This document shows, in pieces, positions 12,940 through 60,867 of a DNA stretch of 64,000 nucleotides. A program made the translations under genes and the position numbers. The DNA is from Octopus sinensis (Eukaryota): NCBI RefSeq assembly GCF_006345805.1, contig NC_043013.1, positions 21,762,001 to 21,826,000 of the forward strand, given 5' to 3'. The notes beneath the pieces were generated by a model, which was given only the letters and a program-made list of their open reading frames with translations, was not told where the DNA came from and ran no database searches. Position 1 is the first letter of the stretch; each line of letters starts with the position of its first letter.

Positions 12940-13197
12940 CGTCTCTATACTTGGTCGGCACAGATCTTCTCAACTGATAAAAATGGGTATTATATTCACT
13001 TATTAGCATCCTCTCTGTTGAGTCTTCTTCGTATAAAATACAGCTTGGACTTATCGTTCTGCTCACGAAGGATTTACATGCAGAAGTTTCAAAACAACTC
13101 TTCGAACAGTTGAAGGCGTCCAGGTCAAGTGTCATCAATGTTTTACCGTCTTTCAGAGCACAGTTTGGTACTTTCATAAAATACTTCAGATATTCAA
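12940..13197 (-). CDS. Internal exon (258 nt, phase 1-1) encoding a PAN/Apple-like domain (type A)
   Basis: Acceptor ttgttacag| and donor G|gtaaac; open frame EYLKYFMKVPNCALKDGK..NCSKSCFETSACKSF..SCILYE..FYQLRRSVPTKYRD; CxxxC..CxSF..CxL spacing typical of PAN. Confidence 0.75.
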
Positions 13198-14884
13198 CTG
13201 TAACAAAGCCAGGCAAATTTAACAACCAAAATACGAAGACGAAAATAAAACATTGTGAAAATAGATAATAATAAAGATAGAGAATATTAAATGTTTGAGG
13301 ATCAGCATTGATATTTTTACCAGGAATAAGTGATAGAGTTGTTACTACCATATTGTAAGGTACAAAGCATCTTGGGATATATAATCTGTTTAATGAAAAT
13401 GACTGCGAATGAGTTTTAAATGCTGTTTAATTAATTCTATTATTTAAATGATTCACAAGTTATATACTATAATGTTTAACGGTTGTCGGTTGTAAAGAAT
13501 GTCCCCTAATACCAGCCCTTTGTTTTATTTAACAAAATGCTTACAAACTGACGGAAAACTGAATTATCACCAATGGAAATTATGTTAAGAATTGAATTCG
13601 TCATAATACGAGATTTATCTTGAGTTTTCTTTTCATCTAATTTACTTAGAAAAGGAAAATATTTTCCTCCACTGAACTTATAAATTAAAGTTTTCAGTAG
13701 TGATTTTCATAATTTTCATAGATATATATCTATATATTGATATAAATTTACTTACGTCCATTTCCAAATGTCAGTGAGATGTAGAAGAGAACTGCAATGA
13801 AAATTTATTTTGGAAAAGCATTTCATATTTCATATTCACGTTTAACATTAATTTACAAAGAATGAAGATGAAAGGAATAAGAAAGAGAAGTGCTACAAGC
13901 ATAATTCAGTAACAAATACGGCGATGACCACCACTACATCACCATAAAATTATCCATTGAAATAAGGAGGGAGTGCGATAATTTGGTGATGGATAGAAAG
14001 AGAGGGAACAGAAGAGAGAGGGGTAGGAGGAGTGAGGGTGAGATAAAAAGAGAGAGTAGCAAAAATAGAAAAAGAGGAAGAAAGAAAAAGAAATGTTATT
14101 TGTTTCAAACGAGATCAGAAGCATCAGTATTTTTTGGAAGAGAACATTCTAGACACTTCAGAGACTTTAGTGAAAGTATTACGTATAACTTGTTCGTAGA
14201 ATTAACCACAGTTTCATTGAAACAGAAATAAATCTCATTAACAGGTTGAAGAAAATGAAGAAAGAGAAATTATTTACTAAATTAGTTTATTTATTTACAT
14301 TTAATATTTACAGTACATTTAGAAGTCAAAGAAAATTGTCGTAGAGAGTTACGACATAAAATTTATATTAACTAATTCTTCCATATTAAACTACCAGACT
14401 TTTACACAACGATTCAAAATAGTCTTGTTGGATTTAAGTAATAGAGATGGCATAAAAATAGCCAATATCTCAAGAGAGTGAGTGTCGTGGAAATGAGTGA
14501 CAATCAACGAACACTGAGGGTGAGTGTTGTGGAGTCTAGTAACAACCATCGATCCCTGATTAATTTTCACCTAACTGGACAAGGAAAAGGCATTGTTCAG
14601 AAGAATTAGGTCCTGTTAATATTCACCCACTAACTTAAAATAGAATAGAAGACCTGAAATCCACCTGATGAATGTCCTGAGAAGAGACAATTGTAGTGGC
14701 GAATATAATTTTATTTAATTTATATTAAAATTTTTTTATGTATTGGATTAAGTCTTTCTTTGTTTGATTTGCAAAATAGTGGTTTTGTCTCTAATTAATA
14801 TTATATAATATTTTACTATAAAATTGGATTCAATCTTAAATCTGATTTTCCCTGTAAATTTGGATTTATTCCCTAATATTTATT

Positions 14885-15190
14885 TTATATATATATATAT
14901 ATATATATATGTATAAAATATATATACATACATACATATATATATATATATATATATATATATATATATATATATATATGTGTGTGTGTGTGTGTATGTA
15001 TGTATATATATATATATATGCATGTATATATATATATATATGCATGTATGCATGTATGTATATATGTATGTATGAATGTATGTATACATACATATATGTA
15101 CATTCATTTGTACATATATATGTATACACATGTGTATATATATGTGCATACATATAAAAACACACATACATATATATATACATACATGTA
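14885..15190. repeat. Compound (AT)n/(GT)n/(ATGT)n microsatellite
   Basis: Directly visible; the shorter paralog is at 62640-62830. Source of the IYIY/HTHT ORFs. Confidence 0.95.
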
Positions 15191-15279
15191 TAATTGCATA
15201 AGTTGGAGTCAAAAAGAAGGAATACGAAGGAACATTTATTTGTAAACCCTAAAATTGTTTCCACGCACCGTAGTCTTTC

Positions 15280-15450
15280 ATTTTGGCAAGAATTTGGTTA
15301 CGCAAACGTTTCTCTTCAGAGAAATATTGTTGTGTCAACGGGTCGTCTGCATGTAACATTATTAAGATATAGTCACATGACAATCGTTCCTTGTGATACT
15401 CAGTGGTGAATAAAATATTGATTAATTGGTATAAACTGGTATTAATAAAG
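15280..15450 (-). mobile_element. Helitron Rep fragment
   Basis: FTTEYHKERLSCDYILIMLHADD matches the Rep motif (Y/T)IEFQKRGLPHAHIL and is similar at DNA level to 20905-20960 and 18470-18500. Confidence 0.55.
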
Positions 15451-16160
15451 GAGTATTGAAGCAAAGGAACATGTTAATTATATATAAACAAAATTATAAT
15501 CTAAGCGGGTTTTTTTTATAAGTAGTGAATATACCAGTATAGTATGAATTTATAGAGATACAAAATTAGAATTAATTTTATAAATAAAGGCTATAAAATA
15601 ATAAAGAAATACAATAAAATGATCATGTAGGGCAGAACACCATAGAAAAGGAAATAAAATAGCTTAATTACCAATACTATGGTAAATCATATGTAGCTTA
15701 TTAACACCAATAGAAATGATTTTTAGAAAAAATATAATAATTCAAAATATATTAGACTAAAAATTATATATTTACTTATTTAGCTAATATGAATTGAAGA
15801 CTGATGTTTGATGTCAGCTAAAGGAATATTTAAGTTATGGAACAATCATATTTTACACTAATCTTTTTTTTTGATTAAGTGTTATATCATAGATTTAAGA
15901 AGTTAATATTGTTACTCCCTACATGATATTTATAGTTTCTTAGTTGTACTTGTTTAGAAGGGTTATTTATATAAAGGCCCTTGTCAATACTAAGATCCGG
16001 AGGGTAGAGCCATTTAAGAAAGAGATAAATCAAGTAATTTCTAAAGATCTTTTCAAACGATATTGTCTTATTGTGTAAAGTTAAAATTTAGGGTAATCAA
16101 GAAGATTATTAAGAATGAAATTTTAACATAAGAATAAAACTTCTTTGAATATTTGGAGTA

Positions 16161-58800: not shown

Positions 58801-58929
58801 GGTGGGGTGGTGCGTGCTGCATGTTTTTGTGGGGGCGGGATAATGTTTTGTTATGGGGTTTTGTTTGATCCTGTTGTTGTATTAGTTTTCATATTGTGTG
58901 TTTGTGTGGCTTAGGTTTTTCTCTTCTGA

Positions 58930-60015
58930 ACAGATGGAGAGATGAAATAGGCATAAAACCCAGTATAGTGCAGCTGCAGAAAAGTGTCATTGAAGAAAGC
59001 TAGCATACTTAGGAAGGTTCTTGCTATCTAAAGCTACTTGTGCGAGCCCGATGTTAGGATTCTTTTCTTTTCCAACAGTCCTATCTGTTGAGTGTATATG
59101 AATAATAATACTAACAATAACAACAATTATAATAATAATGACAATAATAATATATATTAATAATGTTTTAAAAAGTAGACAGAATGAAACTCAATGAATG
59201 GGTCAGGAAGATAAATGATATCATCGGTGATATCAGGACACCAACAAGCTGATAAATGCAATCTCGAAATTTATAGCCCGGAATATAGATTTGAAAGCCA
59301 AAGGTAAATGTCAACGTAACCTGAAGGTGGAGAAGGAGAATAACGCAGTCTATAAACGAGACCAGAAACCATGTTAATATTTTGGAACGGAAAAAGAGAA
59401 ATGAAGTTCAGTGAGTGAAATATGTTGTGCTAAAGAGGAGGTATAGGGTGAAGAGAAAGGGAATCAATGATATGATTGAGGAATTAAAACAGAGGTTGGA
59501 AGCTAAAGCACATAAACTAAAGTGATATGAACAGAGAATTGAGCAGTACAGATTAAACAGACTTTTCGAACAAAATCAGAAAATACTCTATCAGGAACTG
59601 GGAAAGAAAAGGGTGAAAAAGCCGTTCCGGATGCTGAAGAAAGAAAAAGTTTCGATTCAAACATATAGTCTCAGGAGAAACGACACGAAACTGAAGCAGA
59701 GTGGTTAAAGAGACTCAAAGAGGAGAATGGAGAGTATCAGCAGAAAAATTTGTGAATAACCGAGCTGATTAGAGATCAGTGCAGGAAAATTCCTATCCGG
59801 AAGCACCTGGCCCAGATGGGGTTCAGGGCTTTTGGTTTAAAAACTTGACAACACTGCACAGGAGAACTACGAGACAGATGGACGAAGTACCGAATAGTGA
59901 CATCCAAATAATGGCCTGGATGACAAAAGGAAGAACGGTACTATGCCAGAAGGACTCAAGTAAAGGGAATGCAGCTGGAAACTTCCGACCAATATTTTGT
60001 TTGCCAATCTATGTG
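58930..60015 (+). mobile_element. Two R4-like fragments (3' end at 58930-59100; RT-proximal piece at 59170-60015)
   Basis: LQKSV..SILRKVLAI* followed by an AAT-like tail; APGPDGVQGFWFK..WMTKGRTVLCQKD..NFRPIFCLP. Confidence 0.7.
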
Positions 60016-60039
60016 TAAGCTCATGCACTTTGAGAAGTG

Positions 60040-60400
60040 AAAGTGAAGCAGATTGAGAATATTCACTGAGAATATGCACTTTAAAATCTTTTTCAAAATT
60101 GCAGCCGTTTGAAGAAAAATGTTCAGCAACTTCTGTCGAACTACTGTTATTGTGCCTGAAATCCTATTTGTGTCCATTAAATATTTTGTTTAATTGTTCT
60201 TTTGTGCAACGAACATAAATTGAATTGTGTTTCGTGCATTCTGCCGCATACACCAAATGGGAATCTCTACATGTTCCACCTTCTGTATAAATCATAACAT
60301 TTCTGTGATGATTCTTGATGGAATTGACTTGTTGTTGCACATGTTGTTGCACAATGAACAGAGCTTACCTCTCTTGCGGCTGTTTTTCAAGGTACAGCGT
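60040..60400 (-). mobile_element. Penelope-like GIY-YIG endonuclease fragment
   Basis: TCRDSHLVYAAECTKHNSIYVRCTKEQLNKIFNGH fits the PLE pattern TCxS..LVY..C..YVGxT..L..RFNGH. Confidence 0.7.
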
Positions 60401-60609
60401 AGAAATACATTTTCTGCTAAACACATCACTCAAAACTTTATTAGAACTTTAACTCTACAAACAATTATTTTTCAACACACGCTAATCTACATCGATCAGA
60501 GAAATCGCAGTCAATTTTCAAATGCCGACAGTATTGTTTCTCTTTGGACTAAAACATAGAATACAAGTCAAGGAATGAAATAAACACAAAAAGATTCAAA
60601 TTTGTTTAC

Positions 60610-60867
60610 CGTCTCTATACTTGGTTGGCACAGATCTTCTCAACTGATAAAAATGGATATTATATTCACTTATTAGCATCCTCTCTGTTGAGTCTTCTTC
60701 GTATAAAATACAGCTTGGAATTACCGTTCTGCTCACAAAGGATTTACATGCAGAAGTTTCAAAACAACTCTTCGAACAGTGGAAGGCATCCAGATCAAGT
60801 GTCATCAATGTTTTACCGTCTTTCAGAGCACAGTTTGGTACTTTCATAAAATACTTCAGATATTCAA
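60610..60867 (-). CDS. Internal exon (258 nt, phase 1-1) encoding a PAN/Apple-like domain (type A')
   Basis: Same splice sites as 12940-13197, open frame, 8 substitutions and no indels. Confidence 0.75.

Follow-up and report, generated by a model that had tools for sequence, protein, structure and literature searches.

PAN and Apple domains are extracellular modules that in vertebrate proteins are bounded by phase-1 introns. The microneme PAN lectins Sarcocystis muris SML-2 and Toxoplasma MIC4 bind galactose and, among molluscs, the conotoxin genes of cone snails combine a conserved signal region with a hypervariable mature exon. Octopus genomes are known for lineage-specific expansions of gene families, most of them without an assigned role. 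Here we describe a 64,000-nt stretch of Octopus sinensis DNA (assembly GCF_006345805.1, contig NC_043013.1, positions 21,762,001 to 21,826,000; hereafter the window, to which all coordinates refer unless a locus is named). Very probably it is part of a tandem cluster of octopod-restricted genes, each for a secreted protein of about 280 amino acids (aa) with three PAN modules, and it would hold one such gene (gene 1), the 5' half of a second (gene 2) and, between the two, a dead copy of one exon (B'). The locus would then belong to one such lineage-specific family: octopod-restricted, arranged in tandem, predicted to be secreted and made of PAN modules only, which, like their vertebrate counterparts, are bounded by phase-1 introns.

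The original prediction had placed five exons on the minus strand, A' (60610-60867), B (46809-47039), C (36025-36221), B' (26785-26950) and A (12940-13197), each with canonical splice sites and each encoding one PAN-like module. All five were found at exactly these coordinates, and all other family exons described below lie on the same strand. A pyrimidine tract and CAG precede each of the five exons, GTAA stands directly 3' of A', B, B' and A, and exon C ends in TAA. A', A, B and C have a phase-1 acceptor, since the sole open frame leaves two leading bases in each of them, and A' and A (258 nt) as well as B (231 nt) are phase 1-1 symmetric, as had been proposed for the internal exons. From one exon to the next the spacings are 13.6, 10.6, 9.1 and 13.6 kb. 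We considered the near-equal distances from A' to B (13,570 bp) and from B' to A (13,587 bp) as a possible signal and rejected them as a coincidence, the intervening sequences being unrelated.

This inventory was incomplete: an exon D, two microexons and a start-codon exon had been missed. We fixed the gene model from the exon order of about 30 annotated, uncharacterised octopod proteins of roughly 280 aa, for which the canonical order is a start-codon exon, a 36-nt microexon, A, B, a 96-nt exon D, and C with the stop. Two parts of these proteins come in addition to the modules, an N-terminal signal peptide (MLxxNxxQIIFLFYISLTFGNG) and a segment of about 32 residues between B and C (LWNDF...VGCG...YYFVD). 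Both were placed in the window by tblastn of the family proteins, and their exact boundaries were read from the DNA.

In the window gene 1 starts with the microexon at 61414-61449 (36 nt, phase 1-1), which encodes the second half of the signal peptide, (F)LFYISLTFGNG, is framed by the acceptor ttgcag and the donor gtaagt, and matches the family N-termini both in tblastn and in searches with a hidden Markov model (HMM). Exon A' (258 nt, phase 1-1) and exon B (231 nt, phase 1-1) follow, with the first PAN module and a second, hypervariable one, and then exon D at 36729-36824 (96 nt, phase 1-1), a Cys-bearing linker. Exon D encodes (E)LWNDFKQSNTLDKINSVGCGIRVFDSYYFVD(K), with one conserved Cys; its tblastn matches reach 85% identity, its acceptor is tttcag and its donor gtaaga, and its boundaries are identical in every related locus mapped. 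We also considered D as the N-terminal strand of the third PAN domain and ruled this out, as the Pfam alignment stops short of it. The terminal exon C (197 nt) carries the third PAN core and the TAA stop, and an AATAAA polyadenylation signal lies at 35911-35916, 111 nt past that stop.

The codons formed at the gene 1 junctions (GNG-L-EYL, YRD-G-RCP, INR-E-LWN and FVD-K-KDI) match the family sequence, and the splice from the microexon to A' yields GNG-L-EYLKYF, the same as in the homologues. Of the junctions proposed originally, 46809/36221 would be at best that of a D-skipping isoform, the canonical path running through 46809/36824 and then 36729/36221. Every intron is of phase 1 and the lengths of the microexon, A, B and D are all multiples of three, so that gain, loss or exchange of an exon between paralogues keeps the frame; all four class 1-1 exons (microexon 36 nt, A 258 nt, B 231 nt, D 96 nt) qualify as modules. 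Gene 1 is intact and complete save for its first exon. This ATG exon is expected about 0.7 kb past the window end, because collinear homology with a related O. sinensis locus (L001) reaches position 64000.

The PAN identity of the modules was judged by the curated gathering score of Pfam PAN_1 (PF00024), which is 21.4 bits. Each intact exon, scanned alone, lies above it (A' 24.0, B 41.3, C 23.6 and A 23.6 bits), exon C also matches PAN_2 at 23.2 bits, and the whole protein gives 65-66 bits over three stretches. The prediction that the translations would match PAN_1 or PAN_4 thus holds for PAN_1 exon by exon; the PAN_4 threshold is reached only by the concatenated protein. The core Cys pattern C-x3-C-x5-C...C is present in A (HCSKSCFETSAC...SC), B (QCLHKCKVKPNC...RC) and C (DCSRLCMISSTC...KC) and invariant across the family alignment, and it points to two nested disulfides per PAN core. 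The conserved framework comprises 14 Cys, four in A, five in B, one in D and four in C. An extra Cys of the window exon A is Ala in the relatives P0003 and P0004. The first Cys of B may pair with that of exon D; if it does, the skipping of D seen in the model of P0004 would leave a free Cys.

PAN_1 membership and the C-x3-C-x5-C...C core are common to the octopus modules, the N-terminal PAN of plasminogen and HGF, and the Apple domains of factor XI and prekallikrein. By the strict Apple definition of the factor XI/prekallikrein type, which takes six conserved Cys and a C1-C6 bridge, the octopus modules fall outside that class, with four conserved Cys in A and C and five in B. Unlike plasminogen, factor XI and their kin, the octopus proteins have no protease or kringle partner domains, and PAN-1 and PAN-2 are each encoded by a single exon.

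The original prediction had found no signal-peptide exon in the window. Three are present, namely the microexons at 61414-61449 (gene 1) and 13756-13791 (gene 2) and the ATG exon of gene 2 at 17051-17081. The predicted signal-peptide N-terminus is MLRRNYIRIIFLFYISLTFGNGLEY..., and in the N-terminus MLRRNYIRIIFLFYISLTFGNG/LEY (the slash marking the predicted cleavage site, with G-N-G directly before it) a basic n-region, a hydrophobic core of about 13 residues and small residues at -1 and -3 can be read from the sequence, without a predictor. No C-terminal hydrophobic segment or membrane anchor was found in the spliced gene 1 product. Of the two fates proposed for the protein, secreted or surface, it is the first that is predicted for the gene products, on account of the N-terminal signal peptide.

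Searches with the spliced A'-B-C product matched, at a level well outside chance, only octopus proteins (E down to 1e-91, 52-65% identity, 185-355 aa), which are annotated as 'uncharacterized protein LOC...' in RefSeq or 'Apple domain-containing protein' in UniProt. Nearly all family proteins are about 280 aa long and contain A, B and C once each; over its full length the gene 1 product can be aligned with P0002, P0003, P0005, P0174, P0177 and P0178, and the same A-B-D-C layout is seen in P0017 from Argonauta hians. A profile search of 5.8 billion clustered proteins gave 14 clusters, all Octopus. A HMMER search of 1.84 billion representatives gave 230 matches at E <= 1e-3, and the named proteins among the 20 best-placed of these are all from O. 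sinensis, O. bimaculoides, O. vulgaris or Argonauta hians. Judging by these matches the family is restricted to octopods, and the lineage-specific family that had been proposed is borne out by the named relatives looked up, all octopod. More distant octopus subfamilies with the same layout also exist (P0018, P0025), and P0015 is an unrelated giant protein of PAN-PAN-Sushi repeats. No paper on the family was found in the literature on octopus or cephalopod PAN or Apple domain proteins and their accessions. What was known already is a family held in databases as 'uncharacterized'; what is new is the corrected gene model and a pattern of constant and variable modules.

Six related loci were taken from O. 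sinensis, O. vulgaris and O. bimaculoides. L001-L004 and L006 were mapped exon by exon, and L005 entered only the nucleotide comparison with the window, which took in five of the six; in that comparison the O. bimaculoides locus (L003) was pooled with others. The five mapped loci, from the three species, have the same exons and the same splice positions, and the acceptors and donors of A, B and D lie at identical positions in 6-7 copies from these species. The octopod relatives (O. sinensis LOC118766701, LOC118766702, LOC118761179 and LOC118766713, and those of O. bimaculoides, O. vulgaris and Argonauta hians) share with the window the architecture, the exon order, boundaries and phases, the signal peptide and the 14-Cys framework. 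Identity to the window over the whole length is 52-69%, and per module it rises to 91% (A, between exon A' and LOC118766701 in amino acids) and 97% (D). The window exon 1 and microexon match L001 at 96-100%.

The tandem arrangement recurs in the relatives. O. vulgaris L002 holds two complete A-B-D-C genes in tandem, and the O. sinensis chromosome CM016875.1 carries LOC118766692, 701, 702, 704, 705 and 713, with the region matching the window at 21.9-22.06 Mb. Around exon 1, intron 1 and exon A, three O. sinensis loci match the non-coding sequence of the window at 91-95.5% identity; O. vulgaris nucleotide blocks match at 80-92%, and transposable element (TE) copies at up to 99%. At L001 2646-2831 (O. 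sinensis CM016875.1, upstream of LOC118766702) we noticed an unannotated D-C pair, 92-97% identical to gene 1 D and C and frame-shifted where exon C begins, probably a pseudogene copy. Among the annotated models, P0011 reads exon C out of frame and P0012 reads through the A donor into the intron. Public models of the family are often chimeric, shortened or frame-shifted. The cluster calls for re-annotation, for which the corrected six-exon, all-phase-1 model can be used throughout.

Gene 2 begins with a first coding exon of 31 nt at 17051-17081 (ATG at 17081-17079), which encodes MLRRNYIRII plus one base and ends in phase 1. This exon is 96% identical in nucleotides to exon 1 of O. sinensis LOC118766702 (MLRRNYLQII), has the donor gtaagt and matches the family HMM at E = 1e-3. 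The microexon at 13756-13791 (36 nt, phase 1-1) supplies the second half of the signal peptide, and exon A (12940-13197; 258 nt, phase 1-1) the first PAN module. Neither tblastn nor the HMM scan revealed a B, D or C exon of gene 2 at positions 1-12939; the window holds the 5' half only of gene 2, the remainder lying past the window start. A six-frame HMM scan of the window showed no further family exons beyond one marginal fragment. An open stretch at 12436-12567 (minus strand, about 370 bp downstream of gene 2 exon A) with the sequence ...HNNYTRCLTECVTQILC... is similar to the exon B PAN core (HMM E = 0.035). The homologous O. vulgaris intron retains it at 90% nucleotide identity, but in O. 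bimaculoides it is disrupted, and it may be either the remnant of an exon or a chance match.

Exon B' (166 nt) had been called broken, and it is: it contains in-frame stops and, compared with B, a 71-bp deletion that removes the C-x3-C-x5-C core and a 6-bp insertion. B' and B have nearly identical splice sites and nearly identical intron sequence for about 65-100 bp on either side, and B' lies in a duplicated block of about 1 kb (26107-27110 versus 46238-47200). The HMM scan found no remnants of other family exons near it. Gene 1 and gene 2 lie 18.9 kb apart, and B', a dead orphan exon, stands in this gap; in two O. sinensis loci the corresponding intergenic gap is roughly 5-7 kb. Just downstream of B' and B, inside the duplicated block, we also observed (TATC)n/(TCTA)n microsatellites at 26347-26596 and 46518-46656.

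The original prediction had read the five exons as cassettes of one array, and they could be taken as parts of one large gene that joins or omits PAN cassettes through alternative splicing. In keeping with such a gene, every internal exon is phase 1-1 and frame-neutral and B' keeps perfect splice sites; in addition, one O. vulgaris model, P0001, draws its exons from two neighbouring genes, and the model P0004 skips D. Exon C, however, ends in a stop conserved in the family and is followed by AATAAA, and between B' and A stand a conserved ATG exon, the sequence upstream of it, which shares 95.5% identity with O. sinensis, and a microexon for the signal peptide. The proposed junction 26785/13197 is implausible. 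B' itself would shift the frame and bring in stops, the relatives in three species are all separate genes with the order start exon, microexon, A, B, D and C, and nearly all family proteins are of about 280 aa with a single copy of each PAN exon. P0001, which fuses its two adjacent genes at L002 9983-49657 (O. vulgaris OX597830.1), is an automatic 'hypothetical predicted protein', and P0004 is a prediction which relies on an internal donor in C and omits D even though its locus contains that exon. We consider one such large gene very unlikely. What stands of the cassette duplication proposed originally is that duplication built the locus, with a history of its own for exon B; the five exons do not form a single-gene array.

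The cluster reading also has to account for the close likeness of A and A'. These exons differ at 8 nt, 4 of them synonymous and 4 non-synonymous, and belong to duplicated blocks of 3.5 kb: that at 12720-16277 (minus strand), which spans intron 1, the microexon, exon A and 220 bp downstream, pairs with 60406-63925 at 93-94% identity (self-blastn; repeat families D9-D14, D18 and D19). An identity of 93-97% over 3.5 kb could come from uncollapsed haplotypes or a mis-join in the assembly, and several O. sinensis members of the family do lie on short unplaced scaffolds that resemble alternative copies. Yet 47.7 kb separates the two copies, which share one orientation and enclose unrelated sequence, a divergence of 3-7% is high for alleles, and for both O. 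vulgaris and O. sinensis independent chromosome-level assemblies also contain tandem genes of the family. An artefact of this kind appears extremely improbable, and we read the repeat as two genes of a tandem cluster. Intron 1 of gene 2 also contains a long (TATA)n-type tract at 14886-15192.

Across the family, exon B differs from all other modules. Mean pairwise amino acid identity is 0.78 for the signal peptide, 0.75 for A, 0.69 for D and 0.73 for C, versus 0.48 for B. Mean non-synonymous divergence (dN, by NG86) is 0.15 in A, 0.14 in D and 0.16 in C and reaches 0.49 in B; mean synonymous divergence (dS) is 0.20, 0.35 and 0.31, and 0.86 in B. For B, both 150-bp intron flanks are better conserved than the exon itself in 13 of 15 pairs; this holds for A in 7 of 21 pairs and for D in none of 21. 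Between close pairs, omega (dN/dS) is 0.9-1.25 in B versus 0.24-0.72 in A, C and D, and exon B of LOC118766701 and that of LOC118766702 are separated by 10 non-synonymous and 0 synonymous changes. These values suggest that the history of B is deeper than that of the other modules, and not merely one of faster replacement.

The modules of a given gene also do not share their closest partners. Gene 1 and LOC118766701 are 0.91 identical in A and 0.97 in D but 0.38 in B, and the best partner of gene 1 B, P0005 (0.62), has the poorest A (0.64). Over 66 pairs, identity in A and identity in B are uncorrelated (Spearman rho = -0.04). Such a pattern is suggestive of a mosaic history of modules between paralogues, in which the history of exon B differs from that of A, D and C.

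The likeness to conotoxin genes lies here: in a tandem mollusc family, one exon has raised dN and dS and is less conserved than its introns, amid a conserved signal peptide and flanking modules. There is no sequence relation between the two, and the variable part of the octopus genes is a whole PAN domain within a three-domain protein; the likeness to venom peptides is one of gene pattern.

In the protein that we propose, a signal peptide split between the ATG exon and the 36-nt microexon precedes PAN A, PAN B, the Cys-bearing linker D and the C-terminal PAN core C. The cluster would evolve by tandem gene duplication together with unequal crossing-over or gene conversion, an exchange that would homogenise the 5' and 3' parts of the genes and leave, or select, diverse B exons, and B' would be the debris of one such event. 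The products would be soluble extracellular binding proteins, lectin- or adhesin-like, with A and C as a constant scaffold and B as the module that sets ligand specificity.

This putative binding role draws on analogy. The closest solved structures fall in module B, where SML-2 (2yil; E = 4e-4) and MIC4 (4a5v; E = 2e-4) are the best sequence matches, followed by the plasminogen PAN. SML-2 and MIC4 are likewise small secreted proteins of tandem PAN modules only; the match is very distant (about 23 bits, over one module), and they differ in kingdom and in module number and share no gene structure with the octopus family.

A stronger version would hold that exon B is a hypervariable specificity cassette, kept diverse by diversifying selection and exchanged between paralogues by way of the all-phase-1 structure, that octopods thereby have a private secreted PAN recognition repertoire, and that orphan exons like B' are its by-products. 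We offer this only tentatively, as it is possible but doubtful. If true, the repertoire could serve immune, gamete, prey or surface-glycan recognition.

Several points weigh against this reading of the locus. Expression, splicing and secretion are, for both genes, predictions from the genomic sequence and the homologues. No database protein is identical to gene 1 (best whole-length identity 65%, or 69% with exon D included), so that this copy is unannotated, many RefSeq models of the family are shortened, frame-shifted or chimeric, and some family copies may be pseudogenes. The omega of the family overall, 0.5-0.8, also fits weak constraint. The statistics on selection and mosaic history come from 6-12 sequences, in pairs that are non-independent and over exons that are short, and are suggestive. 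The binding analogy is drawn from distant PAN proteins at E = 4e-4. Finally, the AlphaFold2 model of the homologue P0002, built on a 9-sequence alignment, is too poor for use (mean predicted local distance difference test score, pLDDT, 44; predicted template modelling score 0.28), and the strand-helix-hairpin pattern that it has in each module is, at this low confidence, suggestive only.

The same facts would be met with if the window copies were unexpressed, decaying pseudogenes whose intact frames reflect only recent duplication. B' is dead, the exact gene 1 protein is on no record, omega is high throughout the family, the C exon upstream of O. sinensis LOC118766702 is frame-shifted, and many annotated relatives are shortened. 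Against such decay, the five exons of gene 1 in the window and the three of gene 2 are all open, with canonical splice sites and all conserved Cys, and the start codon, signal peptide, stop and polyadenylation signal are all intact. Moreover, A and A' give an omega of 0.24 while their flanking introns differ by 3-5%. We therefore regard decay of the window copies as unlikely and keep to a cluster of intact genes with one dead exon between them.

The division into constant A, D and C and variable B leads to a testable hypothesis, that of a recognition or binding repertoire. Tissue-specific expression, for example in suckers, skin mucus, salivary gland, reproductive tract or haemocytes, would make the family a candidate for octopod-specific biology; otherwise this would be an ordinary fast-evolving secreted family.

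The introns had been described as filled with TEs, and ORFs of TE origin confirm this. Two of these open reading frames (ORFs) match RVT_1, one intact at 5808-7496 (562 aa) and one at 42704-43930. The intron between A' and B contains a mariner-type DNA transposon of 1.27 kb at 53512-54785, which has terminal inverted repeats of about 40 bp and a Transposase_1 ORF (53920-54432); at 93-94% identity, copies of it occur in the introns of a related O. sinensis gene (L001 30432-31705) and in the pooled L002/L003 sequence. A scan for tandem repeats found nothing in the window that bears on the PAN genes. Non-coding repeats in the window include a 393-bp unit repeated 2.1 times at 97% identity (21696-22527) and a perfect 105-bp tandem duplication (50929-51138). 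Tandem 249-bp and 184-bp units at 3836-4696 and 37771-37934 carry a motif like a tRNA B-box (GTTCAAATTCCGCC) and have related copies in L001 and L004; they are probably an array derived from short interspersed elements, and ARAGORN called no tRNA genes in the window, these units included. Around the intact RVT_1 ORF at 5808-7496, a 0.8-kb repeat is present in three direct copies (1-876, 4941-5777 and 8030-8888) that are 96-99% identical, in a tandem arrangement resembling that of long terminal repeat or Penelope elements. Its copies elsewhere in O. sinensis are 94-99% identical, which suggests a recently active retroelement family.

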